Positions 33,187-58,322 of a stretch of 64,000 nt of DNA are shown here, in pieces. Location of the stretch: assembly GCF_001194135.2 (NCBI RefSeq), contig NC_068982.1, forward strand, positions 128,712,906 to 128,776,905. Reading direction: 5' to 3'. Position 1 is the first letter of the stretch, and each line of letters starts with the position of its first letter. Below the pieces are notes generated by a model. That model was not told where the DNA came from, made no database searches, and saw nothing but the letters and a program-made list of their open reading frames with translations. Origin of the DNA: Octopus bimaculoides (Eukaryota). The position numbers and the translations under genes are program-made.

Positions 33187-33262
<76 letters not shown>

Positions 33263-35240: not shown

Positions 35241-35311
35241 ATGCCCTGATGCAGTACCAGGCAGTGGCTCTCATGGCTTCTGATCTTAACTCATTTGAAG
35301 TGTTATCATTG

Positions 35312-35795
35312 TTTTGGTATAAAAGATGGACTACAGCAAATATTCTGCTCAATAACACAGATTTGCTTGTCAGTTGTTTGACCTTAACCAGTTGAGCATG
35401 TCCCTTGGTGACTGATGATATGTGCATCTCTGATCATAAGCAGAAGTAGTGGGGGAGCATCAAAGCCAAGTATTGAAAGGAATTTTGGGGCATTTGGATA
35501 ATTCCCCTCTGGAAAGATGGGTGTTTTGCTCAACATCTTTAAACAACTCTGATTCAGGGACCTTTTGAGTGGGATGGGTTACTCAATGCAAGGAAAATTC
35601 TAACTAGGCCCCACCTGCAGGGTTATGCATTGTTTAACTTGATATGAGATCACCATGTCATGCACATATGGTTGTGATGCATGTACCTGGTGTACCCTTA
35701 TCAGATGGGTAGTCATGATGGGTATATTGGGTTTCGTATATTTTGCCAGAGTGTCAGTTTGATGGCATGCACTGCTCTCTCACTCAATAATAATA
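35312..35795 (+). mobile_element. ~470-bp dispersed retroposon-like element with an (AAT)n tail
   Basis: Colinear with 51084-51560 (for example gatgatatgtgcatctctgatca, agcagaagtagtgggggagcatca); ends in AAT repeats. Confidence 0.7.
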
Positions 35796-35822
35796 ATAAT
35801 CAAAAAAATAATAACTACTTAC

Positions 35823-36128
35823 ATATTTCTCTCCTTGGAATTGTTGCATCAGCTGTTTCTAGTGGAGGACTCTCTCCTTCTGCATTTACTGCCATAACAC
35901 GGAAGTAGTATTCCGTATCCTCAACTAAACTCGTAACACGATATTCAAGAGTGTTTGCATCAACCTCTCCAGCCTTATTCCAGGTTAAACGAGAGGCAGA
36001 TTTATATTCAATAATGTATTTAGTAATAGGTTGTCCTCCATCTTCACTGGGAGCTTTCCATTCAAGATCCACATAATTATGGGACACAGCAGTTACTTGT
36101 AATGGTCCTTTAGGATGTCCAGGAACAT
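35823..36128 (-). CDS. FN3 exon D34, class C' (YVDL)
   Basis: VPGHPKGPLQVTAVSHNYVDL...IPRREI; 306 bp. Confidence 0.9.
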
Positions 36129-36718
36129 CTACAAGGAAACAAATATACAGCGATTTTAACAAAGATTTGCAACAGAAAATTAATTATGTTTGAATTTATA
36201 TTTACCATTCCAACTAAATTTTCAATATATATTCATTTTTGACAATCGAAGTTTGTTAAAGCTTATCTTTCCTGGCTATGGATACATCAAATCCATATAA
36301 GATTGTAATGAATTCTTTATAATCAGATTTCAAAAGATTGTAAAAGAATCTCATGAAATAAACATATTTTTGATATATTTCTATTATAAATTAATTAGTT
36401 ACTGTTTGCATAATCAATTACTGAATGATTATACTCCAGACTAATGATAACAAGGTCAAAACTTATCATAAGTCAACATATATACCTAACTTAACTCAAT
36501 AAGTTTCCATAATATGTGATTGACACTGAGCATGAAGCTCAAATTTAAAGTAAGTCTCTAAAAATTTTAAGCCAACATACAAATTTTCTGATCTAGTTAT
36601 TCATCATACAAAAGTTAAATTAGAAAATTTATGCAATTCAAAATTATGATGATTTAAATTATATATATTTATTTATTTATTAAAGAATAATAAAAATATA
36701 TTATATCTAGCTACTCAC

Positions 36719-37024
36719 TGTAAGGGCTCTTTGCAAGTGTGGCTCCATCAGTCTCTAATGGATCACTGCGACCAATTTTGTTGACTGCAATAACTCTAAA
36801 TTCATATTCAGTTCCTTCTGAAAGGCTCTGAACACAATAAGAAGTTATATCAGATTGAACTGTAGCAACATTGCTCCAATATTGACGTTTGGCTTCTTTT
36901 TTCTCAATAATAAACCCTGTGATAGGTGAACCACCATCACTATCTGGATATTTCCAAGTAATGCCCATTGAAGTTCTCTGGATATCAAACACTTTAATAG
37001 GACCTTTTGGTTTTGAAGGTTTTT
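36719..37024 (-). CDS. FN3 exon D33, class A'
   Basis: KPSKPKGPIKVFDIQRT...LAKSPY; 306 bp. Confidence 0.9.
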
Positions 37025-37466
37025 CTGAAATATAAATTATGGTTGTTGCTACACTGTCATAATAATCTGAGTGATATTCAAAGATATATTTGAAACTTCA
37101 GCATTAAAGTTAGAAATAAATTTAAAAGAAAAGAGGACAGTAAGTTAAATGGCTATTCATTAACAATTATATTTTAAAGATATTACTCAGATGAAAAAAA
37201 ATTAAGTTTTAGAAAGTAGCAAAGAAAAGTTCAGAGCTAATTTCAAAATATTATCTAAAACATTTTGACTTCCATAGAAGAAAGAAAATCAAATATACTC
37301 TATTTCAAACTAAAATAAAATCTAAATAAGCTGACAGAACCTTTTAAAACATACTAAACTTGTTATTTATTAAAACCGAAAGTGATGTCCAAAAAGACAA
37401 AGATAGAGTAAAGTAATCAGCGCATTAAATATATTAAATACATAAAACAAGATTCTGAAGACTTAC

Positions 37467-37769
37467 GGAGTTCTTTCACAGGAGTGACAGGTTGATCCAT
37501 ATCACATGGCGCACTCGTTCCAACAGTGTTTGTTGCACATACTGAGAAGTAATAGTCAACATTTTCTTTAAGGCCAGTAACTTTATCAGTAAGTAAGTGG
37601 CTCTCGACAGATGAAACTCTCTGGCGATCATCACTCTTTTTCTCACGCTTCTGAATGACATAGTGTGTTATCTTTGCTCCACCATCAGAACGAGGTGGTT
37701 TCCATTCCAAAATAGTGAAATCAGCACCAACTGCTGTTGATTTCAAGTTAATTGGTGGACCTGGAGGAT
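37467..37769 (-). CDS. FN3 exon D32, class B
   Basis: PPGPPINLKSTAVGADF...PVKEL; 303 bp. Confidence 0.9.
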
Positions 37770-38861
37770 CTGAAATATAAATAAAATTTTATTAGAAATA
37801 TGTAAAAATATACTCCATTGGATATCAAATACTCAGAGAGGTATATAGAAATTTATATATAAAATATTGTATCTATTATCTTAAATTTTGTATCTGCCTC
37901 ACAGGACAAGTCATGTAAGGTTAAGAAAATCTATATAATAAAGTAAATTAATTGAACTACTGAGCAATTCAGTGTTACAGCATTAAGACTACTTTATCCC
38001 GGTTCACTTCAGATATTTATTTCACTAATCTCAAATGTATAAAATCAATATCAGTTTTAGCAAGATCTGCAACTCTTTAATCCACACTTGTCTAGCCAGC
38101 TAAATCATAATCTAATTTTCTTAAAAGTTTATTTTAATCAGTGAATTTGATCCATTCTATAGAATACAAATTAAGTTTTCCTTATATTTCTAAAATATAT
38201 AATCTCAAGTATGACTGTGGTGTTATTAGCTCAGTTCACAGCCACAATTACATGGTTCTGAGCCTGATACTACTTTGGTTGATTAACATTTCATGAATGG
38301 AATTTAGTAAATGGAAATCATATCTGTATGCATATGAAATGTGTGTTTATATTGTGGTGATCTTGTTTGCGTTCTTTTATGCTCTAACTTAGCAGTTAAC
38401 AAATTGAGGTTGACTAAGTAAGTGCTAGCCAAGAACATGTAGCAGCAGTTGATATGATTAACTAAATTCTTGAAGTGATTGCTCCAGTATAGCTGCAATC
38501 TAATGACTGAAACTAGAAAAAGAATTTTTTTTTTTAAATGTTTTCTCTATGAAAATCCCTGTGAAGGTTAAATAGTCATTGTGCTTCAGTAGTAAGCTTG
38601 GGAAGCAAGAGACTAATAAAGAGTAAGAAATTGGCAGAATGGCAACTGGAAACTAGTACTGTATGTTTCCCAAGAAAAACATATATCTTGAGATTCTGGA
38701 ATGGAGGTCCATGACCACTAGCACCTGTAGACATGGTACAGGAAGAGAGAGAGAGAGTGGAATTACAGTTGGTGACTAGTTCTTATGATCGTTTGGAGCT
38801 TTTGATGATACACACTGATACATAATGGAAGAGAATATTTCAAAAATTGAGTTCAACTTAC

Positions 38862-39167
38862 CAACTTTCTTGGGTAATTTAGTGTAATCAGAAGTTTCCA
38901 GTGGTTGACTTTGACCTTCTTCATTCACAGCAATAACACGGAAATAATATTCAGTATCTGCATTTAGATTTGGAACATAGAAAGTAAGAGTTGATCCATC
39001 CACAGTTCCAGCTTTAGTGTAATATGTACGTGAGGCTTGCTTGTATTCAATGATGTAACTAGTTACTGGTTTGCCACCATCACTCTTTGGTGCTTTCCAT
39101 GTAAGATCAACAGAATTATAAGTTACATTATCAACTTCAAGTGGTCCCTGTGGGCTTGAAGGAACAT
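38862..39167 (-). CDS. FN3 exon D31, class C
   Basis: VPSSPQGPLEVDNVTYNSVDL...LPKKV; 306 bp. Confidence 0.9.
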
Positions 39168-39419
39168 CTGAAAAATTTATATAAAAGATCATGTTATAGT
39201 CTATAAATGAAACATGAAAATTTAAAATGATATATCAACAAATATTTTCTGGGAAAGATTTTAAAACTTTTCTTATAAACTTTTATCCTTGTTCAAAATG
39301 AATATGGTCTTTTGGTTGCATAAGGTGTTTTCTAGGAAATTTTATTGATTACAATCTTTTAAAATATATCAGTGATACATATCAAACATTTCTAACTAAA
39401 TATTCTATTCTTTACTACT

Positions 39420-39520
39420 CTAGGCACAAGGCCAGTTGATTAGATCGATCCAGTATGCAACTGGTACTTAATTTATCGACCCCTAAAGGATGAAAGGCAA
39501 AGTCGACCTCGGTGGAATAT
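39420..39520 (-). mobile_element. Second SINE-like family, partial copy
   Basis: ctggtacttaatttatcgacccctaaaggatgaaaggcaaagtcgacct. Confidence 0.6.
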
Positions 39521-39723
39521 CAACCCAGGGTTTGGGTTAAATTAGCAGAAGTTTGATTAATAAATAATAATGTAGATCTTTATGAAAGCAACTTTACAAA
39601 ACTGTAAAATATTCGTAGCTTTGGGCTTTCAGATCTAATCTTTTTATGATATTCTGATGCAACTGAAATTAAAATATATTTTTTAAAATTCTGACTTTAA
39701 GTGAAATTCTTTAAGTTACTTAC

Positions 39724-40029
39724 CAAATGGACTCTTTGCAAGAGTAGCATCTTTGGTCTCCAAAGGAGCACTCTCTCCAACTCTGTTTTCAGCAATAACT
39801 CGGAAATAATATTCAGTTTTCTCTTTTAGATATGGACAGCACAATTCAAAAGTGGATGCATTGACTTTGGAAACTTTGTTCCAGAACGTGCTTGATGCAG
39901 CACGTTTCTCAACAATGTAACCTGTTATGGGAGAGCCACCATCATCTGGTGAAGGCTTCCATTTAATACTAATGGAAGTACGCTGAACGTCAGTGACCAC
40001 CAGAGGTCCTTCCGGTTTAGCAGCAATAG
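39724..40029 (-). CDS. FN3 exon D30, class A
   Basis: IAAKPEGPLVVTDVQRT...LAKSPF; 306 bp. Confidence 0.9.
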
Positions 40030-40217
40030 CTGAAAAACAAAAATTAGGAATATGTAACATATTTCATACAAAGACAAATATATATATTTATCTATCTACA
40101 AAATGATTTTTAAATATAATTTTAAATGAGAATGTTACTTGAAATTAGAGTTAAAAAATATCTCCATAAATAGATTATATATAAAATATAAATGTATTCT
40201 AACAGATTGAAACTTAC

Positions 40218-40520
40218 TTGGGCCTTTCTTGGGTATCACAGGTTTTGGACTCACACATGGTTCACTCAATCCAATTTTGTTTTCAGCAATTGCTGAGAAG
40301 TAGTATTCAATGCCATCCTGGAGAGAAACTGCTTTACAGAATGTTTCATAGGGACCCACTTTTGTAACTTTACTCCAGTTGTCAGGTTTATTGACTGATT
40401 TCTGAATGATGTAGCCTGTAATAGGACTGCCACCATCATTCCTTGGTGGTTTCCATTCTAAAGAAGCATAGTCTTCTCCTACTTTAGTTGGAACTAAATC
40501 AATAGGAGGCTCTGGAGGTT
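40218..40520 (-). CDS. FN3 exon D29, class B
   Basis: PPEPPIDLVPTKVGEDY...IPKKGP; 303 bp. Confidence 0.9.
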
Positions 40521-40804
40521 CTAGAAATTAAAAAAATTTAAATAGTTAAATTTTCAAAAGCATATATTTTAGATAATAACCATATATTATTAGACATATT
40601 TGTGAAAATATATAAAATATAGAAGATGTGAAATAATTTTTAAAGTTATTCCATGAGAGAATTCAATAAATTTTATGAACAAAATTTTTATGCAGTATAA
40701 ATCATCACCATTTAACATCTACATACCATGCTAAAATCTGTTGATATAGCCTAAAAACTTAATTTTTTTAAAGAATTGTTATAAATGTTAAAACAAAATC
40801 TTAC

Positions 40805-41110
40805 TTAGATCTCTTGTTGGTTTTGTAATATCTGTAGCTTCCAAAGGAGCACTGCGGCCTTCTGCATTGACAGCAATGACTCGGAATAGATATTCAGTAT
40901 TTTCAAAGAGATCTTTTGCTGTGTATGTTGTGGTATGTGCATCAACTGATCCTGCTTTAGACCATGTGGTTCTGTCTAAAGTCTTGTATTCAATGATATA
41001 ATTAGTAATAGGTGTCCCGCCATCCTTTTCAGAAGGTTTCCATTCTAAGTCAGCACTATTAAATGTAACATTGCTGATATTTAATGGTCCTACTGGTGGA
41101 GATGGAACAT
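40805..41110 (-). CDS. FN3 exon D28, class C (absent from the ORF track)
   Basis: Manual translation VPSPPVGPLNISNVTFNSADL...KPTRDL; 306 bp. Confidence 0.88.
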
Positions 41111-41439
41111 CTGTAAATGAACAAAAGCATTACCAAGATTAATAGTAAGCAGTCATAACTAATTATGTTAGAAATAACAACAGAAACTATGTATAGCATA
41201 ACATCAATTACATACCCTATTAAGGTCATTTTATTTTACAATAAAATTTATCCAAAAATTCATTTTTGTATTAGCTTTTTAATAATTATGTGCGTATAAA
41301 TTATATTCCTTGAGAACTAGATGTTGGATATAAATTCTTTTTATTATATTAAGATAGTTTTTTTTCTTTTTTCTTTTACATCCATGGCCAGCTCTGCTTG
41401 AGCAGACTTATTGCACTTATCTTTTATCTTTTACTTGAT

Positions 41440-41629
41440 TCAGTTATTGGATCACAGCCATGCTGGAACATTGCCTTGAGGGGTCTAGTCAACAAAACAA
41501 CCCCAGTACTTAGTTTTAAGCCTGGTGTTTATTCTATTGATCTCTTTTGCCAAAACCACTAGACTAGGGGGTGTAAACAAATCAACACTGGTTGTTTAGC
41601 AGTGGTGGGGGACAAATACAAATACAAAG

Positions 41630-41630
<1 letters not shown>
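41440..41630. mobile_element. Dispersed repeat, third family
   Basis: gccatgctgg...tagtcaa...ttattctatt...aa(t/c)caacact(g/a)gttg shared with 55370-55545. Confidence 0.5.

Positions 41631-41685
<55 letters not shown>
41630..41685. repeat. (AC)n(AT)n microsatellite
   Basis: Read directly; a second (TA)n lies at 41799-41842. Confidence 0.95.
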
Positions 41686-41689
<4 letters not shown>

Positions 41690-41690
41690 T

Positions 41691-41788
41691 GGAGGCATGT
41701 AGCTTAGTGGTTTGGGTGTTGGACTCATGATCATAAGATTGCGGTTTCGATTCCTGGACCAGGCAATGCATTGTGTTCTTGAGCAAAA
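41691..41788 (+). mobile_element. tRNA-derived SINE head, same family as 20914, cut by a gap
   Basis: ggaggcatgtagcttagtgg...ggtttcgattcctggaccaggc...ttgtgttcttgagcaaa aligns by eye to 20914-21010. Confidence 0.75.
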
Positions 41789-41798
41789 NNNNNNNNNN

Positions 41799-41848
<50 letters not shown>

Positions 41849-42164
41849 GTTTCTTTCAGTTTCCATCTCCCAAATTCACTCACAAGGCTTTGGCCAGCCA
41901 AGGGATATAATAGAAAACTACTGCTGTAATAACCAGCACTGAAAACAGGTTTATCCTTCTTTTAAATATTTAGGTTCTTTAGTGAGTTTTTAAAGAAGTT
42001 CTCTTAATAATATAGTTACAGAAATTAATATATTTTCTTTAATAAAATTATAACAGATATTGTAATATCATTGAAGGACCAAAAAATATCTAGTTATTTT
42101 CATGGACAGCAAATATGTCAAAATGTAATTCTAAATTCATTGATCCAAAATTTATTTTACATAC

Positions 42165-42470
42165 CATAAGGACTCTTAGCAAGAGTTGTTCCTTCAGTTT
42201 CCAATGGAGGACTCTGTCCAATTTCATTTTCAGCAAAGACACGGAAATAATATTCAGTTTTCTCAATAAGGTTCTTGCAACAGAGTTCTGTAGTTGAAGC
42301 ACTGGTTCGATCAACTTTAGACCACTTGTTACGAGATGCTTCTTGTTTCTCAACCAAGTAACCAATGATTGGAGAACCACCATCATCCTTAGGTGCTTTC
42401 CATTTAATAGTAATTGAATTTCTTTGGACGTCAATGACAGAAATTGGACCAATTGGTATTGAAGGTGCAA
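42165..42470 (-). CDS. FN3 exon D27, class A
   Basis: APSIPIGPISVIDVQRN...LAKSPY; 306 bp. Confidence 0.9.
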
Positions 42471-42888
42471 CTGAAATATATTTAAAGAGGAAAGTTTAGT
42501 TTTAATTAAATGATAAATACTGCCCTCATGAAACATAAAACTCAGCTAATAAAGTAGCATAAAGATGACAGTAATTCTTGTGATTCTTTTTGCCTTTTGG
42601 GAAAGACTTCCATATTTAGAGGATAATTTTTCAGACAATTAATCTCACCTGTTGAGAATATATTAATATTTACATTAGGTTTTGATTTCTAATTATTATA
42701 AGGTACCTTATCTCAAATATATTTGCAAACTGGATTCAAACAAGGACACTTTATTTCTAAATCTTATGTGTTAACTTCTCAATCCACTAAGCACTTAGTG
42801 CATATATTAAGACACTGGAACATGTGACAGAGTGGCTAAGAATCTTTTGTTTGAATCAAAAGTTCTAGTTCAAGTTTCACTTGGAATG

Positions 42889-43022
42889 AATGTACATGTT
42901 TCGAAATAAGGCATCTTATGAAAATTGGAGTTTGAAACAATGTGAATATAATTCACACTCCCAAAAGTAACTCAATACTCTGGACAATTATCATCTGCAT
43001 AATAACTCATTTCAGAATATTA
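42889..43022. repeat. 134-bp direct repeat, copy 1
   Basis: Identical by eye to 43608-43741. Confidence 0.9.
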
Positions 43023-43250
43023 GATCTTTAAATAATCAATAGTTTATATTTTAAGTGAATATTTTAAATGGAGAATCATATCCTTTGTAGTGATTCTCAT
43101 ACAACTATGTGTAGCTTCAGATGTTTTATTATTTTTCAACAATATAATGGCCCAGTTAAAGTACAGTACCTCTCAGCCAAGCACTGATTAAATAAGCAGG
43201 ACACAAAAAGTTATTAAACAACGTTATTTATGAAACAAACAGTCTCTTAC

Positions 43251-43544
43251 GTAATTCTTTTTGAGGTTTAACAGGCTTAGTTTCACAGGGTTCACTTAAG
43301 CCAATCTTGTTTTCAGCAAAAACTGCAAAATAACACTTAGTATCATCTTTCAAGTCTTTAACTCTGCAAGAATTATCAAAAGCTTCAACAGTTGTCACTT
43401 TAGTCCATTTGTCATCTTCTTTCTTCTTGATGATATATTTGGTAACCTTAGAACCACCATCTCTCAATGGTGGTAACCATTCTAAGTCTACAAAGTTGGT
43501 TCCAATTTTCACAGGTTTCAAATTTGTAGGAGGTCCAGGTGGGG
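43251..43544 (-). CDS. FN3 exon D26, class B
   Basis: PPGPPTNLKPVKIGTNF...PQKEL; 294 bp (shortest full exon). Confidence 0.9.
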
Positions 43545-43607
43545 CTATATTTAAAAAAAGGAGAAAACAAAAATGTAAATAAAGATTTGAAAGTAACAGA
43601 ATTATTT

Positions 43608-43741
43608 AATGTACATGTTTCGAAATAAGGCATCTTATGAAAATTGGAGTTTGAAACAATGTGAATATAATTCACACTCCCAAAAGTAACTCAATACTCT
43701 GGACAATTATCATCTGCATAATAACTCATTTCAGAATATTA
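43608..43741. repeat. 134-bp direct repeat, copy 2
   Basis: Identical by eye to 42889-43022; the two copies bracket exon D26. Confidence 0.9.
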
Positions 43742-44274
43742 TGATAGAAGATCATTTATTACAAACTATGAAAATAAAATAATAATTCTAAAATGATGAC
43801 ATCCAAATGTGATTAAAATTTAGTAAGAGTTATGTATATAAGATAATTAACAATCTAAAATATTTTATAGGCTATTACTTAAATTTCTTACATTCAACCA
43901 TTACACTCTATACTATTATTTTATACTTTTAATTATTTTATATTGAGCACATGTATTATATGTATGAAAAATGATTTATTTTATGTACAAAATATAAAGT
44001 TTTTTCTGCTTAGTAATGATAATTTGTTCTAATTCTATTTTAAGTGTGAGTAGTTGAGCACTAGTTCCTGAAGATATAAAGTACAAATATTTTCACTGAG
44101 ATGAGTAACGAATGTATTTCAAACATTCTTACATATTATTTCAATTCTAGATTTGCATTCAAGAATCTATAGGAAGCTATTGGTGAATGAATTTTGTTGG
44201 TGTTGAGAAAACATTATTAAGATTCCCATGTATATTACAAAAATATAATGTTATTATAAGAATGAAGTACATAC

Positions 44275-44580
44275 ACAAATCTTTCACTGGTTTGGTTTCA
44301 TCAAGAGCAACAAGTGGCCTGCTGGTTCCTTCTGAGTTTATTGCACTGACTCGGAAAAGATACACAGTGCCATCGGTCAGATTTTGAGCTGTGAACTTTG
44401 TTATATCAGGAGCTACAACACCACATCTTGTCCACGATGGACGATCAGTTGAACTGACTTCAATAATATAACTAATGATGTCAGAACCACCGTCACTTTC
44501 AGGAGGTTTCCAAGAAAGGTCTGCTGAGTTGTGAGTGACATTATCAACAATAAGTGGGCCTCTTGGACTTGATGGAATAT
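44275..44580 (-). CDS. FN3 exon D25, class C (P[KR]GPL subtype)
   Basis: IPSSPRGPLIVDNVTHNSADL...KPVKDL; 306 bp. Confidence 0.88.
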
Positions 44581-44890
44581 CTAATGAACAGAAAAAAATT
44601 TTTAATTACATTCTCATTCATATGAAGTAGTTTTGCTTATTTTAGAGATAAAAAAAAATTTATTTTTATAAACAACAAATTAAAGTAGTAGATAATTATA
44701 CATTTAATTTCAAATGAAAGACATTACAGGAAAATACAAAGGTATAATGGATAGAAATATTGTTTTTGTTAAAAGCACTTAAAATTAAGAGAATATTATA
44801 TTCTATATTGGTGATTTGATAAACATCTATTGAAAATTACAAGTAAATGAGTAGCTTTGAAATTTAATTTATAATTCATTAATTTCATAC

Positions 44891-45196
44891 CATATTTGTG
44901 TTTAGCCAATGTAGCTTCAGAAGTTTCAAGAGGTTCACTTTGTCCAACTTCATTAATAGCAATTACTCTAAAATGATATTCTGTTTTTTCTTCAAGATCC
45001 TTCACACAGTACTGAGTGATGAAATCAGCAACTTTATCAACCTTCGACCATACCTTACTGGAAGCTTCTCGCTTCTCAATAAGATATCCTGTCAAAGGTG
45101 AACCACCATCTTCTTTTGGTGGCAACCATTTAATTGTAATGCTATTCCTTTGGACATCAACAACCACAATAGGACCTGTTGCTTTAAATGGAGCAG
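44891..45196 (-). CDS. FN3 exon D24, class A
   Basis: APFKATGPIVVVDVQRN...LAKHKY; 306 bp. Confidence 0.9.
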
Positions 45197-45473
45197 CTAG
45201 AAAATATAAAAGAAAGATTGATTTGTAATTAGAAATTAAATATCAAAATATATTGAAATATTAATCAATAAAATATAAATATAAAATGTATATGAAATCC
45301 AAATTTGATAATTTTAACATGTTTGAGTGATATTTAAGATTGCTCCCGCCCCACAAAAAAAAAACAACAAAAAAAAAACAAATACGATTGTTATTTCAAA
45401 AGAAATAAAATAGATATTTTCTAAATAAATAACATTAAATCAAATCAATCTTATTAAACAACTTATGACTTAC

Positions 45474-45776
45474 TAGCATCCTTTCGTGGGATGATGGGCT
45501 TTTGTGTTTCAGCAGCCTTTCCAATGCCAACTTTATTCTGAGCACTGACAGAGAAGTAATACTCCACACCCACTTTCAAATTAGGCACCTTACAAGAATT
45601 TTCATAGCCACTAACTGTTGTTACATCAGTCCAGCTTCCAGTTTTCTTTTCTTTCTTTTTGATAATATAATCAGTTATTTTGGAACCGCCATCACTTTCA
45701 GGTGGATTCCAACTTACTAAACAATAATCTTCTGTAAGTTTAGTATGTTTGAAGTTCTGTGGTGGTCCTGGAACAA
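45474..45776 (-). CDS. FN3 exon D23, class B (absent from the ORF track on the minus strand)
   Basis: Manual translation VPGPPQNFKHTKLTEDY...IPRKDA; 303 bp. Confidence 0.88.
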
Positions 45777-46044
45777 CTGAAATAAGAAGTCAAATATAAA
45801 TAAATGATGTATTTTTGCGTTTAATAAACTTTATCAAATAAAACTATTGTTGTTATTGAAAATCAGTATGACTTCACTAGAAAGAATTTTAAAACAACAA
45901 ATACTTTTATAGAAATAAGATAAACCCCGCATATATTTATTATTGAATATCTAGAAAACTTCATCCCCATTTGGTATAATAGTCAAGCATTCAGTAATTA
46001 TTAAGAATCTTTTTTTAATTGCAATGAATATAGCATTAACATAC

Positions 46045-47871
46045 CTGGTACTCTAGTTGGGATAGTAACATCAGTAGCTTCTAAACGTTGGCTTTGTCCT
46101 TCAGCATTGACAGCAATGACACCAAAGATATATTCAGTGCCTTCGGATAATCCAGAAACTGTAAAATCTTTTACTTTTTCACCAACTGTACCACACTTTG
46201 TCCAAGTGGATCTGGAAGCTACCTTGTGTTCAATTATGTATCCTGTTATTGGTGATCCACCATCATCTTTAGGTGCTTTCCAGTGAAGGTCAGCACTGTT
46301 ACGAGTGACATTATCTACATCAAGTGGGCCAATAGGAATAGAAGGTGGGTTGAAAGGACTTTTAGCAAGAGTGGCATCATTAGTCTCTAATGGTGGTCCT
46401 TTTCCAACTTTGTTTTCAGCTGTTACTCTGAAATAGTATTCAGTTTTTTCTGTAAGATTTCCAATCTTTAGTTGAGTTGTTAATTCATCAACTTTGCTAA
46501 CTTTAGTCCACTTGGAGCTTGAAGCTTCTCGTTTTTCTACAGTATAGCCAGTCACTGGAGAACCACCATCATCCTTTGGAGGTTCCCATTTAATGCTAAT
46601 TGAATTACGCTGAACATCTGTCACAGCAATTGGTCCAATGCATTTGCCTGGTACTGTTGCTGCCTTCTTTGGTATAACTGGTTTTGCTGTTTCTGCAATT
46701 TCACCTTGGCCAACTTTATTTTCAGCTGCAACAGCGAAATAGTACTCTGTGTTTTCCTTAAGATTTGGTATTTTATAAAATGAATCAAATTCTTTCAGGG
46801 TAACTACTTTTGTAAAATCACCTGTTTTCTTCTCTCGCTTGAATAGGATATAATTTGTAATTGGAGAGCCACCATCACTTTTAGGTGGATGCCATTCAAT
46901 TACAGCAAAATCTTCTCCAACCTTAGTTGGTTCAACTGATCTTGGAGGACCAGGAGGTGAGAGCTTTCTAGTTGGCTTAGTAATGTCTGTTGCTTCAAGT
47001 GGAGGGCTCTTCCCTTCAGCATTTATTGCAATAACACGGAACAAATATTCTGTATCTTCAATTAGCTTTTTAACTGTAAATTGAGTAGTTTTACCATCCA
47101 CAGTGCCAGCTTTTGACCAAGTGGATCTGCCGACAGTTTTTACTTCAATAAGATACTCAGTAATGCTAGAACCACCATCAGATTTTGGTGGTTTCCACTC
47201 AAGATCTGCAGTATTCATAGTTACATTTGTAACTTCTAGTGGTCCCAGAGGTGCTGATGGAACATCAAATGGGCTCTTAGCTAAAGTAGCTCCTTCTGTT
47301 TCTAGTGGCTCACTCTGACCAATTTTATTCACTGCAATTACTCTAAAATGATAGGATGTCTTCTCTCTCAAATTTGGACAGCAAAGCTGTGTAGTGTTTG
47401 AATCAACAGTCTCTACTTTGGACCAATAAGTCTTATTCTCTTCTCGCTTCTCAACAATATAACCTGTAATAGGTGAGCCTCCATCCTGAGTTGAAGGTTT
47501 CCATTTGATAGTTATAGAGTTACATTGAACATCAATAACTTCAATAGGTCCAACAGGTTTGGAAGGTGGAGTTGGTTCCTTTTTCAGAATAATAGGTTCT
47601 GCCATCTCACAGGGTATACTGATGCCAGCTTTATTCTTTGCAAAGACAGAGAAATAATATGGTACTTCTTCTTTCAGACGGTTAACTTTCAATGATGTGT
47701 CATAATCAGAAACAGTGCTTTCAATTTCCCAATCACCTTTCTTCTCTTTCTTTTTAATGATGTATTCTGTGATAGGAGATCCTCCATCAGACTTAGGAGG
47801 AGACCAATTCAAAACTACAAAGTTAGCACCAACTTTAGAAGGTTTGAGATCAATTGGTGGGCCAGGAGGAC
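46045..47871 (-). CDS. Six-domain intronless FN3 exon D17-D22 (B-A-C-B-A-C)
   Basis: 1,827 bp = 609 codons, open throughout (603-aa ORF in the track); acceptor ...cattgaaaag|GT CCT CCT GGC, donor CCA G|gtatgt. Confidence 0.92.
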
Positions 47872-48334
47872 CTTTTCAATGAAAAAAAAAAAGAGATTTT
47901 AAGTTTAATCGTCCATCTAATTAAAAAATATAACAGAAAAATACTCAACAATTTGTTAAACATTTACTACATTTAAAAAATTAAGCATAAAATATATGAA
48001 TTTAACAAGTACACATAAAGAAAATAGGATGTTTCCAGCGTTTTTATAACATGTCAAATATATTAGTGAGTATTGAATTGGGTATGTGAATATCTTGCAA
48101 TTTTAGTTTGATTACAAAATATGCTATGAAACAAAGACTAATGTGCAAGTTTTAATTACTTAGAATCACATTTTAATATAAAATATTTTGGTACAAATTA
48201 AAAAGAAAATTAAGTTATTTACAAAAGCAAAAGAAAGCCTCTTTTGCCAACAATATGGTATAAGTGGATGTATTAAAACAACTGTTGAAGATTTAACATC
48301 TAACAATAGGAAAAAAAGAAAATTTGTCCCTTAC

Positions 48335-48640
48335 TTATCTTCTTCCGAGGTATCGTGACATCTTTAGCTTCTAAAGGCTCACTGCGTCCTTCAGCATTTA
48401 CTGCAACAACTCGGAACAAATATTCAGTATTCTCAATTAGATCTGAAGCAGTATATTTTGTTACATCAGGGCCTACAGTACCACATTTGACCCATGTTTT
48501 GCTATCAGTTGGCCTAAATTCAATGATGTAATTGGTGATTGGAGTACCACCATCACTTTCAGATGGTTTCCATTCTAAATCAGCAGAATCATGTGTAACA
48601 TTGCTGATTTCCAAAGGTCCTTTTGGTTTAGAAGGAACGT
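48335..48640 (-). CDS. FN3 exon D16, class C (P[KR]GPL subtype)
   Basis: VPSKPKGPLEISNVTHDSADL...IPRKKI; 306 bp. Confidence 0.9.
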
Positions 48641-49137
48641 CTAAAAATGACAAACATAAACTATAATTAGTTACTTTATCAAAATAATATGATAAATTAA
48701 TCTTATGTATGAAAAGTTAAATAAAGAAATTCACAAAAGAAGTTTAAAATGTTACATCATTAAAGAAAATAGTTAAATGCTAAAAGTAAGGATTAAGACT
48801 TCCTAAACAGTAAGTAAAAATATTATATTAAACAATATTTTATGTTGTTTTGTATTTGGTTTGCAAGATTCTTGATATGAACTCATGTATTGAGACATGT
48901 ATCTCAAGAGGCTCAATATGCCATTAAGTGAAAAAGAATCGAAATGTTTATTACTAGCATACTAACCCTACCAAGATAAAACAGAATTTAACAAATATCA
49001 TTATATTTAAACTGTTTAGGTTTTAGATATCTAAGTTTTAAATATTTTATGTATTTTTTTATGTTAATAAACAAGTGATATTATTTTCATAATACAGTAC
49101 AGACAAAGGATTAACTTAACAAAAAAGATGCACATAC

Positions 49138-49443
49138 CAAATGGACTTCGAGCCAATGTAGCATCTTTGGTTACAAGTGGTTCACTCTTTCCAATTTTAT
49201 TAACAGCAAAAACTCGGAAATGATATTCAGTTTTCTCAGTCAGATACTTGCAACAAAGTGCAGTAGTAAACTGATCAACTTTTCCAGCTTTAGTCCAGAC
49301 TGTGCTTGAATTTTCTCGTTGTTCAATAATGTAACCAGTAATGGGAGAACCACCATTGTCTTCAGGTTCCTTCCATTTAATGCTAATAGAATCCCTTTGA
49401 ACGTCAGTGACTTCAATAGGGCCTTGACATTTTCCTGGTACAG
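49138..49443 (-). CDS. FN3 exon D15, class A (absent from the ORF track)
   Basis: Manual translation VPGKCQGPIEVTDVQRD...LARSPF; 306 bp; donor gtatgt. Confidence 0.88.
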
Positions 49444-49940
49444 CTAAAATGGAAAAGAAAATGATTTATGAAATTATGCAAATATTATCTCTTAATATCA
49501 TAGCAGTTATTACTTGAGTAAGTACAATTATTTGTTGCTTGAAGCTTCAGTTATGTTCACACTTTCCATGACACCAAATGCCAGCCTGTTATGATGAGTA
49601 TCAATATATTTTACTGAAGCTTTAATTTGAGTAATAGAGTAAGTTTAGAACTTGGAACACATGGCATAGAATTTGTGGCTTGTTTTGAATATAACCATAG
49701 ACATAATATTTTTGTATTATTTTTGTATTTATTTAACTAGTTGCAAAACTTTAGCTATTAAATTTATAACTGCTCTCACTAGCTCTTCATTTTCAATGTG
49801 CAAGAAAATCATTTACATCATCAGATGAAATTTATGGTTTTTATCTCCTCTTATTACTCATCTACAATATTGTTTGCAACTAATAATTGAAATTTTATGA
49901 TTTTATTTCAACCGATTAAAATAAATAAAATGCAACATAC

Positions 49941-50240
49941 TTGGTTCTCTTTGTGGCACAATTTTCTTGGTTTCTGCAGTTGGGCCAACACCGGCACTAT
50001 TTTCAGCACACACAGAGAAATAATGATCAACATTTTCCTTGAGACCTTTAATCTTGTATGTGAAATCAGTTTCCTTAAGAGATGCAACATCTTCCCAGTC
50101 ACCAGTAGAACGTATTTTCTTTTTCAAGTGATAACCTGTAACTTTAGATCCACCATCATCTTTTGGTGCTTTCCATTGCAGGGTGACAAAGTCTTGTCCG
50201 ATTTTGTCAGCATGGAAGTTAACAGGTGCACTGGGAGGTT
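49941..50240 (-). CDS. FN3 exon D14, class B
   Basis: PPSAPVNFHADKIGQDF...VPQREP; 300 bp. Confidence 0.9.
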
Positions 50241-50397
50241 CTATAAAACAGATAAAAGTACTATCATAAGCAAATGAATAACTATCCTAATGTAGAAGCT
50301 AAAATATCAATCAAAGAATTAACCATAAAAGATATTTTTTAAAAATGCTTTATATGAAATATCATTATGAATAAAATGAAAATAATTTGGATCTTAC

Positions 50398-50703
50398 GGA
50401 TTTTCTTTGTGGGTTTTGTAGTATCAGTTGCTTCTAAATAGGGGCCTTGACCTTCAGCATTCACTGCAGTGACACGGAAAAGATATTCTGTTCCTTCTAA
50501 AAGTTTAGTTGCTGTAAATGTCAATGTTTTGCCATCTACAGTACCACATTTTGACCATGAAGTTCTTGTTAGTGTTTTACTTTCAATGATATAGTTAATA
50601 ATGGGAGTGCCACCATCAGATTTAGGAACTTTCCATTCTAAGTCAGCAGTGCTTTCAGTGACGTTACTGATTTCCAGAGGACCAATTGGTGCAGATGGAA
50701 CAT
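50398..50703 (-). CDS. FN3 exon D13, class C
   Basis: VPSAPIGPLEISNVTESTADL...KPTKKI; 306 bp. Confidence 0.9.
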
Positions 50704-51083
50704 CTAAAGAATCAAGAATTATATTTGAATGAGACATATCAATCAAAAGAACCAATTTATTAAAAATTGATGTGAAAAGTTCCCTACAATATGTGAATAG
50801 ATATATACAACTAAACTACAAGAACAGTAAATGAGATGTTATTTATGAAGAGAATATATAAAAAGAATACAGAGAAATAGTCTCAGTGACCAGCCATTAA
50901 AAGTATGATAAAAGAATTAGATACAATTAACTATAAAAGAGAACTAAAACGTGTGGATTCAATTGTGAATATGCTAACAAATGTGATATATGTTTCAAAA
51001 ATATAACAAAATATAAGAAAAATACAATAAGGTATATAAGCTCTTCAATTTACACAATTGAACATAATAATAAAAATAATGTC

Positions 51084-51560
51084 TTGGTATAAAAGATGGT
51101 CTACAGCAAATATTTTGCTCAATACCAGACTTCCTTGTCAGTTGTTGACCATAACCAGTTGAGTATGTCCCTTAGTGGCTGATGATATGTGCATCTCTGA
51201 TCATGAGCAGAAGTAGTGGGGGAGCATCATAGCCATGTGTTGAGAGAAATTCTTTGGAGTTTGAAAAATATTTACCTCAGGAAAGATGGGTGTTTTGTTC
51301 AAATTCCCTAAACAACCTTTATTGAGGGACCTTTTGAGCAGGATGGGCTACTCAGCCTGAAGAAAATTCTAACTGGGCCCTACCTGCAAGGTCATCCACT
51401 GTTTATTTTGATGTGAGATCACCATGCTGCACAGATAATGTTGTGCTGGATGTGCCTGGTGTACCATTATCAGACAGGTAGTCATGATAGGTAGACTGGG
51501 TTTCGTATATTTTACCTCAGTGTCACTTTGATAGCATGCACTGTTCTCTCACATAACAAC
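51084..51560 (+). mobile_element. ~470-bp dispersed retroposon-like element with an (AAT)n tail, second copy
   Basis: Colinear with 35312-35795; AAT-rich tail continues to about 51636. Confidence 0.7.
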
Positions 51561-51958
51561 AATAATAATAATAATTATTATAATAATAATCATAATAATT
51601 ATAATAATAATCATAATAATAATAATAATAATAATATACTTTTTGATACTTGTAACCACATCTTCAAAGCTAGAACTTTTACTTTTTTTTAATATTTACA
51701 TTTTCACAATGTTTTGATTGGTCTGCTCTCTGGTGGTTACCAGGTGTCTAACTCCAGGGTGTATAAATAATATAAGAGGAGATACAAACCATGAATTATT
51801 TCTAACATCATAGTAATAATGTAGTGTATGTATCAGAATTTTGTGAGAGTGAGGTAAATAATACTTAACATAGCTAAAGCAGAAACTAGGAAATAAAATA
51901 AATATAATTTCTTTGCTTATGGTCTAAAATAATGAGATAAACAATTATAGTTATTTAC

Positions 51959-52264
51959 CAAATGGACTCTTTGCAAGAGTTGCTTCTTTTGTTTCTAATG
52001 GCTCACTTTGTCCAACACTGTTTACAGCAAATACCCGGAAGAAGTATTCAGTCTTTTCAGTTAGTTTTTTGCAACACAAGTCAAAAGTTATCTCATCAAC
52101 TTTATCTACTGATGTCCATACAGTACTGTTTGCTGGGCGTTTTTCAATTATATAGCCTGTGATAGGTGAATTGCCATCACTTTTGGGGGCTTTCCATCTG
52201 ATGCTGATAGAGTTTCGCTGAACATCAGTGACTTCAATAGGTCCAAGAGGTGGTGAAGGTACAG
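51959..52264 (-). CDS. FN3 exon D12, class A
   Basis: VPSPPLGPIEVTDVQRN...LAKSPF; 306 bp. Confidence 0.9.
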
Positions 52265-52798
52265 CTAAAAGTAAAGACCAAATTAAATGTAATACAATCT
52301 TTCTTGTGAATATAATATAAAATAAATTTACATATTTGACTTGAATGTCTATTTTATCATACACCATTTGAAATTAATTCATTAGACTAGAAAGATATTA
52401 ATTGTTAATCTAAAAATTTGTTTCTGATTAATTTTAAAAGTGTAAGTAAACACTATAAATTGCTCAAGACAAGCATAACTTCTGACTACCTTTCTGTTAT
52501 AGTAGGTTAGTCTTGATGGATAGCAGATATGACAGAATGTGGATAGCAAAAAAGTAAAGAGACCAACACTCTTTATACATAATACTTAATATAAGTTATA
52601 TTAGAAATGAAGAGATGACAATGATTTCAATAACTTCCAAAATGATGGTTCTGTCCCACAATACTAAGCAGCATTGATACCATCCAATGATATCTGCTCA
52701 TTTAGGCTCACAAAAGAGTAATTTCCAGATATTTTAGGCAGGATCATTTTCCTTTCTCCCTAAAATTAATTACTAAACTATTTACCTTTCACTAAGAT

Positions 52799-52800
<2 letters not shown>

Positions 52801-52829
<29 letters not shown>

Positions 52830-52861
52830 GTTATGTGAAAGGAGAAGAGAGAGAGAGAGAG

Positions 52862-52899
<38 letters not shown>
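52801..52899. repeat. (GT)n(AG)n(GT)n microsatellite
   Basis: Read directly. Confidence 0.95.
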
Positions 52900-52901
<2 letters not shown>

Positions 52902-52932
52902 CACATGCATGTTTTACTGAATGTATACATAC

Positions 52933-53235
52933 TTGCGGCAGCCTTAGGAATAACTGCTTTGTCTGTGATTGCTTCTTTACCAATACCAGCTTTGTTCTCA
53001 GCAGAGACTGCAAAGAAATGTTCAACATTCTCTTGCAGTTTAGGTATTTTGGCTTTTGTGTCAAAAGCATCAACTGTTTCAACTTTCACCAAATCTCCAG
53101 TTCTTTTAATTCTTTTGAAAATGTGGTAATGTGTTACAGGAGAACCTCCATTCTGTTTTGGTGGTGACCAGGTGATTGAAGCAAAGTCTTTTCCAACTTC
53201 GACAACCTCCAAATTAACTGGCGGACCTGGTGGTC
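52933..53235 (-). CDS. FN3 exon D11, class B
   Basis: PPGPPVNLEVVEVGKDF...IPKAAA; 303 bp. Confidence 0.9.
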
Positions 53236-53464
53236 CTATTAAATGAAACAAAAAATATTTCATATTAGTTTTGTTTATTTCCTAACTTTGTAAATACAAA
53301 TTACAATTAATAGTAACTGATACAAATTATATCACATCATCATCATTTAAAATCCGTTGTCCATGCTGGCAAAATTTACTCTATCTAATTTTAAATAAAT
53401 AAATACGTTTTGCTAATGATTTATACACATGCATACTCACATGTACACTACACATACATGACTA

Positions 53465-53610
53465 GGCTTCTTTCAGTTTCCAACAACCAAATTCATTCAC
53501 AAGGCATTAGGTACTTTAGAAGACATTTTGCCAAGGTATCACACAATGGGACAGAGCCCAAAATCATGTGGTTGAGAAATGAACTACTTAAACACACAAC
53601 CATGCCTGTG
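53465..53610. mobile_element. SINE-like fragment
   Basis: ggcttctttcagtttcc...caaattcattcacaaggc matches 41845-41890 (ggtttctttcagtttcc...caaattcactcacaaggc). Confidence 0.5.
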
Positions 53611-53791
53611 CACATACATACATTTTCTAAAGGAATCAGTTAATTTGCTCAATAGCATGCTACTATGTAATATTTATTTTCATAAATTATATTGACTGTT
53701 AAAGTTATATGAAGTATTTCAAAACATAATCTTAGATCAAAACATTTGCCAAACCAGGCAAATTTCATATTTACAAAAACAAATACTTTAC

Positions 53792-54097
53792 CTATACGTG
53801 CTGTACATTTTGTTACATCATCTGCTTCCAGTGGAGGACTCTGTCCTTCTGCATTGACAGCAATGACTCTGAACCAATACTCAGTACCTTCTTCAAGGGC
53901 CATTGCAGTATAAGTTGTTGTTTTTCCATTTACACTGCTGAGTTTTTTCCATCCAGTGCAATATGAAGGTTTAATCTCAATAATGTAACTTGTAATAGGT
54001 GTACCACCATCCTCTTTGGGTGGCTTCCATTCAAGATCAGCAGAATTTGTGGTGACATTTTTGATCTCAAGAGGACCAATTGGAATTGATGGGCAAT
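53792..54097 (-). CDS. FN3 exon D10, class C
   Basis: CPSIPIGPLEIKNVTTNSADL...KCTARI; 306 bp; AAG acceptor. Confidence 0.88.
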
Positions 54098-54608
54098 CTT
54101 TGAAACAGAACAGAAATTAAATATATTGAAATGTCATCAGTATCTTCCAATATTAAAAATTAATTTTCTTTATTCAGTTTATTCAAATACTTAAACATAC
54201 AAAAGTACATTAATCATTGTGATAGACAACTAATTAAAATCAAATGTTGATAAATTTAGTTTTATCTCTATTAAACCAGAAACATAAAATTTATATTCAT
54301 AATAATAATTTTATTGAACAAAACTATTTAATTTATCATAAAAGTATTTGCCATTCTTATTGAATAAAATTATCTAATTTAATATATAAATAGATAAATA
54401 ATACTTGCCAAATTTATTCAACAAAACTACTTAAACTATCATAAAAATAGATTATATTTTCTAATTTTATTGAATAAAATCAATTTATTTTAAAATAAAC
54501 GATAATAATAATATCTGCCAAAACAATAAATTATAAAGAAATGGAAAACACAGAAAGCAATTTAGACTTATAAAAATGCTCAAAAATATGTTATGAATAT
54601 CAACTCAC

Positions 54609-54914
54609 CAAAAGGACTTTTAACTAAGGTTGCTTCCTTTGTTTCCAAAGGAGGACTTTGGCCAACTTTGTTAACAGCAATCACTCTGAAATGATATTTG
54701 GTTTTCTCAGTAAGATGGGTTGCAGTGTAGGTTAAAGTGGAGTCATTGACTTTGCCAGCCTTTGTCCAATTTGTTATAGATTCTTCTCTATATTCAATGA
54801 TATAGCCTGTAATTGGTGAACCACCATCATTTTCAGGTTCTTTCCATTTGATAGATATGGCATCACGTTTGACATCTGTAACTTCAATGGGACCAACACA
54901 CATTGATGGGACTT
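54609..54914 (-). CDS. FN3 exon D9, class A
   Basis: VPSMCVGPIEVTDVKRD...LVKSPF; 306 bp. Confidence 0.9.
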
Positions 54915-55369
54915 CTGAAACAAAAAGGATAAATAACATATAGTATCTATAGTATCACTTCCTTTTTAAATATGCATAAAATATAAAATAATTTTCATAG
55001 TAAATAATGATTTATTATTAACTATTTCAATTAATATTTTCTTATTATCAAGACATACTTCTTATGATATCTGATAATTAAAGGGGTGGGGGTGTTACCC
55101 TAAAGTTAGCTTTATTTGATAGTTAATATGAGGTTATGATTTCAGTCCTTACTGGGAGTTCTAAAATATGGGGACAAAGGACTTGAAGAAAATATTTTGC
55201 TTTTATCAAGTTTAAATAATAGAGAAAATTTGTTTTATAAAACCAAACTGAAGTTTGTCTTTTATAAAATTGCTGTTTAAATTTAGAAATATTTTTCTTG
55301 AAATATCATAATCAAGAGATTATGATTAAATTCAAATATTCTATTTTGCATATTTTACTTGTTTCAAGA

Positions 55370-55545
55370 TTGTGGCCATGCTGGGGTACCAGCATGAAGG
55401 GCTTAGTCAAACAAATCAAACCCAGCCCATATTTTTAAAGTCTGATACTTATTCTATTAGTCTCATTTGCTGAACTGCTACATTATGGGGATGCAAATAA
55501 ACCAACACTAGTTGCCAAGTGGTGAGATGGAGACAAACACAAAAG
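55370..55545. mobile_element. Dispersed repeat, third family, second copy
   Basis: Aligns by eye to 41440-41630; followed by CA-rich repeats as in the other copy. Confidence 0.5.
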
Positions 55546-56074
55546 CACACTCATGAGTGTGCATACACATACACGCACATGCACACACACACACACATAC
55601 AATGGGCCTCCACACAGTTACAGAATGTATATCAAAAGATAACATAGAGTGAAATATTAACTTTACATAATTATTTTACTTTTAATAAATTACAACATTT
55701 ATCTTAGAAAATCCTAAAAATATTTTCTATGATCTAGTTCCTAAATAAATCTATTTGTCAAGGAGCAATAGGAAATATCATTCTTAAATCAATAACAACT
55801 AGTATGATAGCATCTATCCTGAGCATCACATCAAGTCAACAAGCAATTGGGGCACCTAAAGAGTTTGAGATCATTTTACACAAATGAAAATCCATCTGAC
55901 TACACTAAAATCTAAAAAATGCTCTGAGTGTATCAAAAACACCAACAGAATGAAAAAGTTAGAGGCTCAATTCTACACTAAATCAAAGTATAAACTTATT
56001 TTTATTTAATAATACATCTGTTATTGTAAGGTGAATCTCTCCACAACATTAGTACAATTGTATATGAAACTTAC

Positions 56075-56374
56075 TTGGCTTTTTCACAAGAGTGATCTTT
56101 TTCGATTCACATGAATCGCTTATTCCAGCTTCATTTTCAGCAAAAACAGCAAAATAGTAATCAGTATCAGGTTCAGCATTTTTCAGTTTATACTTCCTGT
56201 CATATTCATCAATTTTGGCAACATCTTCCCATTTGTCACTAGCTTTGTGTTTCTTTTTAAGAATATATTGGGTGATCTTTGATCCACCATCATTCTTAGG
56301 TGGTTGCCACTCAAGTTCAATGAAATCTTCACCCGTTTTAGTTGGTTTCAAATTAATCGGTGGTCCTGGTCGGG
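56075..56374 (-). CDS. FN3 exon D8, class B
   Basis: RPGPPINLKPTKTGEDF...LVKKP; 300 bp. Confidence 0.9.
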
Positions 56375-56461
56375 CTGAAAAGCAAATGCACATAAAATGT
56401 CAAAAATATTGCAAAAATACTTCTGTTGTAAAACATTGAAGAAATTAGTCATGTTGTTTAA

Positions 56462-56681
56462 CCCTTTAGCATTTGAACTGACCATATCAAGCCCAAATAT
56501 TGTATATGCTTTATGGTCAAACAAAGAGATCTGGCTTCTCACGCCTACTCTACAACTTCTACTCTAAAACTAAGCAATCATATCATTGAAACCTAAAAGT
56601 TACAAGATAATACATGATTAATTTAGAACTATGTGAATAAATAAGCATTACATTTGTTAAAGTAATCTGAATGCTAAAGGG
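56462..56681. mobile_element. piggyBac-like MITE (220 bp)
   Basis: Perfect 12-bp TIRs ccctttagcatt / aatgctaaaggg, flanked by TTAA and CTAA; CCC...GGG ends with a TTAA target are piggyBac hallmarks. Confidence 0.75.
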
Positions 56682-56760
56682 CTAATCATTTATTTGAATT
56701 TTAGATTGTAAGAAAAAAATAAGACAAATACGAAAACATAGTGTGGAAAAAAATAGTTAC

Positions 56761-57066
56761 CAATTTTCTTTTTAATAATGGTTGTATCAGCAGCCTCCAA
56801 TGGCTCGCTTTTACCTTCTGCATTGACTGCTATCACTCTAAACTGATATTCTGTTCCTGCTGATAGATCAGGCACTGTAAATGTTGTAGATTTACCATCA
56901 ACACTGCCAGTTTTAGACCAAGATGATCGTGAAGCTTGTTTATACTCAATGATATAGCTAGTAATTGGTGTTCCGCCATCACTTTCTGAAGGTTTCCATC
57001 GAAGATCAGCAGAGTTTGATGTAACATCAGTTACCTCAAGAGGTCCTCTTGGTTTTGAAGGAACAT
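56761..57066 (-). CDS. FN3 exon D7, class C (P[KR]GPL subtype)
   Basis: VPSKPRGPLEVTDVTSNSADL...IKKKI; 306 bp. Confidence 0.9.
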
Positions 57067-58322
57067 CTGAAATATATATATTCATATGATTATATAGTTT
57101 ACTATACAAATTGTTAAATCACATTATTATGTCATTTGTGTGTGTTTAAGTGTATACACATGTGATATGTTTACAGCGCTGTAAAATTTATAATCATATT
57201 TTAGACAAACTGAAATTTTACAACACTTGTATTTGTAAATGAGCTGTAAAACTAGAAAACCAAATAATTCTCTTAAGACAATATCCTACAAATCTAATGC
57301 AATCCTCTGAAGTACCTTTAAAATACACCAAAAGGCTCATTCTCAAGATGGAATATGAGACAGTGAATATCTTAAGCTAATGGCCATTAATATCTGTCTA
57401 ATCATTTCCAAGAAGATTTACAGTCATATGATGCAAAATAACATATCAAATTATATGTAATGTCCTGATGTCAAATGACATCTGATGTAAAAGTTTTCTG
57501 ATGGGAATGTACAAATAGAATTGTATTTTAATGTATTAGAAATATTCTCCTTAGGAGAAACCTTGTTAAATATTTGTTATTGCTACATCAAATATTAGTG
57601 TTAGAGACAATTCAATCAGGTGAGGTAGGTCACTGGCCATAAACCCTGAATATTATTATAGATTTATCACAACTATAATTATTGGAACAAATGATTATGT
57701 AAAAACCATATGATAGGTCAGGATTCTGGATTCATTGTATTAAAAAAGAAAAGAAACAGCTGACTTAAACTAAATCAATTAGTGGCATGAAAGCAACATT
57801 CAAATTTTGTCTAAAATTGCAGTGTTTGACTTAAGCTGTCAGTTGATCAATTATTGTATTTATTGAATTATGTATCTACTTTTATTGTAGTGACTAGTGA
57901 AAATCACTAGTGCCTAAAGAATTCAACTGAGGGATGGATACCTGAGTTTAACAGACCCATTATCTATCAACTATAAAATACAACGATGAGCATATGTATC
58001 TAATAATCAGAGTAACAGTTCAAATTACAGAGCAATGCAGACTAAGAGAACTGTAAAAATCCTGGTTTGCTGTAAAATACTGGAACAGCTTCTCCATGCA
58101 AACAAGGTCGCTATTGTTACAGAGTTGACTTGTTCCTTCACTCCATCATTTAGGTGAAGTGTAGCCTTTTCTGAGTTAGCTGCTCTGACCATAGATGCAA
58201 AACAACCTCTGCTTTCTTTGATGCTATCTATTACCCTGTCTATCTCCCCTTGTATTGCAGTGAACAAGCTTATATGAAATGCAGTGTATGATATTTTAAT
58301 TACAAGTTACAAGGTTACTAAC

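Follow-up and report, generated by a model that had tools for sequence, protein, structure and literature searches.

The window, by which we mean the whole stretch of 64,000 nucleotides that was analysed, holds the interior of a single gene, which lies on the minus strand and spans it completely (1..64000). An exon scan for phase-compatible AG...GT pairs in minus-strand open stretches recovered 65 complete exons, along with a partial one at either end of the window, and one further exon is hidden in an N gap. The 71 consecutive Fn3 units of the window fall into three sequence types in type-wise alignments, and these alternate strictly in the order A-B-C. Both partial exons are C-type, and the exon concealed by the N gap (5280-5873) is A-type. 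Apart from one long exon at 46045..47871, the array exons are 294-306 nt in length and phase 1/1, have GT-AG splice sites, and encode one Fn3 domain each; this holds for 64 of the 64 other complete exons. Each exon opens on the second and third bases of a split codon and closes on the first base of the following one. All 71 of the 71 units are Fn3, and no Ig (I-set) domain was found in the 64-kb window. Ig domains of the gene may lie outside it, and the Lottia gigantea homologue has I-set domains just upstream of its own A-B-C array.

The mean identity of same-type domains is 61.9% at an offset of nine domains, 56.3% at 18, and 54.3% at 27, and about 51% at offsets not divisible by 9. The array has a real nine-domain super-repeat period, which is built of three-domain A-B-C units. 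One super-repeat exists as a near-copy, with 3786-6814 resembling 9482-12871 (exons 60-63 and 51-55 of the minus strand, respectively). Four exon-centred blocks in these segments are nearly identical (3786-4112 with 9482-9807, 4866-5276 with 11061-11471, 5874-6297 with 11850-12271, and 6433-6814 with 12489-12871; 94-99% nucleotide identity). Some of the domains within them are 96-100% identical, and the intervening introns are of unequal length. The N gap at 5280-5873 occupies the expected place of the A-type exon that would match 11493-11798. The likeness of the two segments appears to reflect a very recent duplication of one nine-domain super-repeat, or gene conversion.

The closest named homologues are titin-like proteins (Saccoglossus, fishes), twitchin-like proteins (Diadema, Lingula, Amphiura), and unc-22, these names being annotations rather than the outcome of functional tests. 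Their hosts are hemichordates, echinoderms, brachiopods, and fishes, and three gene models of Lottia gigantea are also among the homologues. Judged from its Fn3 arrays, its super-repeats, and these named relatives, the gene appears to be a giant titin/twitchin-like sarcomeric gene. Its ends, including the 3' part in which this family would have an autoinhibited C-terminal Ser/Thr kinase domain, lie beyond the window. The repeat unit of twitchin and projectin is Fn3-Fn3-Ig, unlike the A-B-C Fn3 unit of the present array. A titin-like stretch composed only of Fn3 domains also occurs in Lottia and in the Saccoglossus and Diadema models annotated as titin-like, and no description of an Fn3-only A-B-C architecture was found in the literature searched.

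The long exon at 46045..47871 on the minus strand comprises 1827 nt, or 609 codons, and is in phase 1 at both ends. It starts at 47871 behind an acceptor AG at 47873-47872 and ends at 46045 in front of a donor GT at 46044-46043. Pfam recognized six Fn3 stretches in it (E = 2.7e-93), in the order A-B-C-A-B-C. A retained intron of 463 nt (47872..48334, minus strand, phase 1) separates it from the upstream neighbour exon, which encodes the single C-type domain D15 (48335..48640, minus strand), and a retained intron of 268 nt (45777..46044, minus strand, phase 1) separates it from the downstream neighbour, which encodes the single A-type domain D22 (45474..45776, minus strand). We estimate the probability of a 609-codon open frame by chance at about 1e-22, taking some 8% of random codons as stops, which is our own figure from a GC content of roughly 30% and not the output of a tool. 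The stretch stands out by its higher GC in a 1-kb profile because it is entirely coding. A GC comparison with neighbouring exons, proposed in the preliminary description, was carried out as GC3 and gave 0.222 for the fused exon against 0.255 +/- 0.038 for the other exons; since this value lies within 1 SD, a compositional anomaly was rejected.

The fused exon can be divided into six virtual exons on the minus strand, which correspond to domains D16 to D21. D16 (type A, 47572..47871, 300 nt) ends at a lost-intron site at 47572/47571, within the ACT codon of Thr in KKEP-T-PPSK. D17 (type B, 47266..47571, 306 nt) ends at 47266/47265 within GAT (Asp) in KSPF-D-VPSA, and D18 (type C, 46960..47265, 306 nt) ends at 46960/46959 within TCA (Ser) in TRKL-S-PPGP. 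The second A-B-C unit consists of D19 (type A, 46657..46959, 303 nt), with its site at 46657/46656 within ACA (Thr) in KKAA-T-VPGK, D20 (type B, 46351..46656, 306 nt), with its site at 46351/46350 within AAC (Asn) in KSPF-N-PPSI, and D21 (type C, 46045..46350, 306 nt), which ends at the true donor. In a type-wise alignment against the 65 single-domain units, each of the five junctions coincides exactly with the codon that a phase-1 intron interrupts in the paralogues, with 0 indels, and the virtual exon lengths (300+306+306+303+306+306 nt) are those of real exons.

The nine-domain register is unbroken across the fused exon. Its domains pair as D16-D25, D17-D26, D18-D27, D19-D10, and D20-D29/D11, and two of the pairs (D16-D25 and D19-D10) are reciprocal best matches. 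The best paralogue in the window of any domain in the exon reaches at most 70% amino acid identity, which is no closer than ordinary super-repeat neighbours. These results agree with the preliminary description in all of its structural claims. The exon borders and the six Pfam matches bear out a single exon of 609 codons with six domains, the count of 67 exons agrees with the present one, and each of the 64 other complete exons has a single domain. The alignments likewise place the five junctions it had named (KEP/TPPS, SPF/DVPS, RKL/SPPG, KAA/TVPG, and SPF/NPPS) at phase-1 intron sites with no added residues. The domain order given there as B-A-C-B-A-C is the same as A-B-C-A-B-C here, with only the labels differing, and the continuation of the period of nine through the exon is reflected in the identity at offset 9 and the intact register. 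Its central proposal, a precise loss in place of five adjacent introns, is upheld by the paralogue alignments and by the comparison with Lottia described below.

Because the window contains five runs of N (5280-5873, 10179-10471, 31463-31577, 35175-35184, and 41789-41798), the assembly is a scaffolded draft, and an uninterrupted exon might in principle stem from a genome patched or contaminated with cDNA or another transcript. The only close relative of the six-domain peptide in the databases is P0001, with 96% identity. It is encoded on Logan contigs L001-L003, which are independent assemblies of three sequencing runs from a related species. L001, the longest at 7.9 kb, aligns collinearly with 48706-42132 of the window on the minus strand. 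With this contig the fused exon shares 95.6% identity, with 0 gaps over 1827 nt, and the six neighbouring single-domain exons are 95-98% identical, also without gaps, while the six introns are only 86-91% identical and differ by many indels. All splice sites are conserved in this alignment. The introns next to the fused exon belong to this pattern, with the upstream one showing 89% identity and indels and the downstream one 86%. Because the flanking introns are retained, the only sensible reading of L001-L003 is that they represent the genome itself or an unspliced copy. The related species thus has the same uninterrupted exon between diverged introns, in independent contigs from three runs, and in the window itself the exon flanks join ordinary introns at canonical splice sites. 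A cDNA patch in the assembly, which the preliminary description had considered as a source of error, is therefore ruled out, and we regard an artefact as the most improbable of all explanations discussed here. The same comparison indicates that the loss predates the split of the two species.

The divergence between the related species and the window amounts to a dS of about 0.15. The fused exon is under purifying selection, with no stops and a dN/dS of 0.096, compared with 0.046 for the six neighbouring exons pooled. The segment 46045-47871 appears to be a genuine coding exon of the expressed type. In the intron just downstream of it, L001 carries about 1.4 kb of additional AT-rich DNA (L001:2698-4192, opposite 45821-46005 of the window; 27% GC). 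This DNA is full of stop codons, and no copy of it was found elsewhere in the window. It may represent either an insertion in the related species or a deletion in the window species.

The homologue in Lottia gigantea (LOTGIDRAFT_141610/141638/176120, on scaffolds KB200919.1 and KB203489.1, hereafter L004 and L005) repeats the A, B, and C types of the window in identical order, mostly with one domain per phase-compatible exon. It has introns at the domain boundaries in question, as the outgroup comparison suggested in the preliminary description called for, although the domains of Lottia and of the window do not sort into one-to-one orthologous pairs, their identities of 45-63% being scattered across many domains. 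One exon of this homologue carries two domains, A+B, in one open frame (L004:11305-12048, also L005:7901-8644). L005 is a second copy of the L004 region and confirms the two-domain exon only. The A+B exon represents an independent loss of a single intron in the same kind of array. Lottia thus shares the A-B-C array and has a fused exon of its own, but differs in that just one intron is missing, and this exon indicates that intron loss recurs in the gene family. Searches for cephalopod outgroups were made at three levels and yielded no orthologue from squid, cuttlefish or Nautilus. A search with D19 as a single domain gave only 3 weak matches (42-48% identity). No cephalopod protein was among the matches to the 1825-aa spliced query, where the listing appears to cover only proteins up to about 1.75 times the query length (maxima of 1062 and 3193 aa), which would leave out giant proteins. 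A scan of metagenome contigs for orthologues found distant relatives only, with 29-35% identity.

In all likelihood, single-domain exons are the ancestral state of this array and the fused state is derived, so that the difference would be one of intron loss and not of gain. This view is based on at least 65 introns at the homologous codon and phase in other super-repeat copies; a gain scenario would require many parallel insertions at identical sites. The opposite polarity, in which the six-domain block was ancestrally intronless and the introns elsewhere in the array were gained, has in its favour that the sole related species compared is also intronless here. It is opposed not only by those intron positions but also by the nesting of the fused domains among intron-flanked paralogues as reciprocal best matches, and by the occurrence of the same A/B/C types in Lottia with one domain per exon. 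We consider it very improbable. Much the same can be said of a duplicative retro-insertion of a fragment from the same or a paralogous gene. Such an event is conceivable in a highly repetitive array that has undergone recent internal duplication elsewhere, but the nine-domain register is intact across the exon, the best paralogue is no closer than an ordinary super-repeat neighbour, and the exon ends are normal phase-1 splice sites. Because the register is kept and the window has no near-identical source, the fused exon replaced resident exons instead of being inserted among them. On this evidence, we rejected the artefact, the retro-insertion, and the ancestral intronless block.

There remains the question of how five introns were removed. 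All five are adjacent, which has a probability of about 5e-6 if losses were independent among some 70 introns; this means either a single event or a strongly predisposed region. Five separate exact genomic deletions (by NHEJ, microhomology-mediated repair, or replication slippage), clustered through short introns or a break hotspot, would belong to the latter kind. The retained introns near the fused exon are indeed short, at 463, 268, 277, and 310 nt where the median is 570, the two-domain exon of Lottia documents an isolated loss in such an array, and microhomology-mediated exact intron loss is documented in worms and flies (PMC3698931). The junctions themselves are less accommodating. Their bases (A|CT, G|AT, T|CA, A|CA, and A|AC) would share 0, 1, 0, 0, and 0 nt with an intron of the canonical GT...AG form, as judged from the present-day exon bases, the introns being gone, and extant introns examined for comparison have a mean microhomology of 0.4-1.0 nt. 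With 0-1 nt at each junction, microhomology-mediated exact deletion is not favoured. In addition, five of the five losses are base-exact and left no exonic scar, whereas most simple genomic deletions would be expected to miss the exact intron borders (PMC3652778). Together with the low probability of adjacency, these observations make separate deletions an unlikely explanation.

We think it probable that the five consecutive phase-1 introns were lost exactly and in place by one RNA-templated event. Two parts of this best explanation are what we infer, namely that there was a single event and that the template was RNA-derived. In the proposed course, homologous repair or gene conversion in a single germline event would have used spliced transcript sequence of this region as its template, either as a cDNA that was partial and of internal origin or as RNA taking part directly in the repair of a double-strand break. 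Conversion would have extended over about 1.2-1.8 kb, from inside D16 to inside D21, sparing the introns on either side. No retrocopy, poly(A) remnant, or other direct trace of a cDNA exists, nor could one have persisted after homologous replacement, and the mechanism is accordingly read from the pattern of the loss. All five introns are already missing in the one related species compared, a state that a stepwise history would also produce.

Exact removal and simultaneous loss of adjacent introns are predictions of the reverse transcriptase (RT) model, which the literature still debates (PMC3652778). This mRNA-mediated intron loss, which was characterized in yeast and has been deduced for animals, fungi, and plants, shares precise deletion and adjacent loss with the present case (PMC3652778). 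The present loss differs in being internal and in affecting a muscle structural gene with no known germline expression, and no processed copy was observed. Already within the window, introns are retained at about 50 exons farther downstream, which amount to about 15 kb of mRNA, and a 3' bias of the loss is absent; simple reverse transcription primed at the poly(A) tail is at odds with these retained introns. The RT model also presupposes an active reverse transcriptase and transcription of the gene in the germline, and the latter would not be expected where a gene has a structural role in muscle. Direct repair of a double-strand break from an RNA template could remove introns precisely along a short tract at any point of a transcribed gene and would not need a poly(A)-primed cDNA (PMC12065846). 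Such repair has been demonstrated in human cells (PMC12065846). It has also been shown in yeast but is not known from molluscs. Recombination with a cDNA and direct RNA-templated break repair fit the data equally, and the sequence does not distinguish between them. The preliminary description had named a partial cDNA as the agent and had taken clean loss of neighbouring introns as the signature of recombination with it. An RNA template fits the adjacency, the exactness, and the scarcity of microhomology; the choice of a cDNA does not follow, because a 3' bias is lacking, germline expression is not obvious for a muscle gene, and RNA-templated break repair fits equally. Similarly, clean adjacent loss is what the RT model predicts, but to call it the signature is too strong for a model that is still debated.

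A more specific version of the RNA-templated event, which we put forward tentatively and consider doubtful, would place the repair deep inside what would be among the animal's longest transcripts, at least 15 kb of mRNA from its 3' end and with about 50 introns beyond it left intact. The fusion may then also have been kept for locking six super-repeat domains of the thick-filament type as an unskippable block in an array whose other exons could be skipped freely. If the deep-internal repair were true, the locus would be a clean and datable natural case of short-tract transcript-templated DNA repair in a metazoan germline. Irrespective of why the fusion was retained, the six domains would no longer be skippable or duplicable exon by exon, unlike the rest of the symmetric 1-1 array.

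The nearest structural parallel is human TTN, whose exons are mostly single-domain and whose 17,106-bp exon covers A-band super-repeats. A passage of PMC12198301 that cites Bang et al. 2001 gives 363 exons for human TTN and 17,106 bp for the largest one. Both are giant sarcomeric genes with mostly single-domain exons and one exon with a run of super-repeat domains. TTN differs from the octopus array in being a vertebrate gene with mixed Ig and Fn3 super-repeats of 11 domains and a large exon about ten times longer; the array described here is Fn3-only, has periods of three and nine domains, and has a fused block of six. The likeness implies no orthology. Neither exons with several domains in genes of the titin family nor the concerted loss of neighbouring introns is new, and the latter is on record for many lineages (PMC3652778 and works cited therein). 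The exon is a new and clean example and represents no new kind of element or mechanism. Its merit lies in the dozens of retained homologous introns on both sides, which serve as built-in controls, in the repeat structure, which fixes the ancestral state, and in its location well inside a very long transcript. Being internal and not 3'-biased, the loss bears on the debate between cDNA-mediated and deletion-mediated intron loss. It also shows a route to multi-domain exons in giant muscle genes, such as the 17-kb exon of human titin.

Two features of the introns may be recorded. An open frame of about 107 codons lies on the plus strand at 9855-10176, antisense to the gene, abuts the N gap at 10179-10471, and contains RERLKALGLYSLERRRERYVIIYIWKILEGL; it resembles the tail of a retrotransposon ORF, but this identification is tentative, as Pfam gave no match. 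The introns also contain long simple repeats of the dinucleotide and homopurine/homopyrimidine kinds, at 33150-33390 and 34980-35400.
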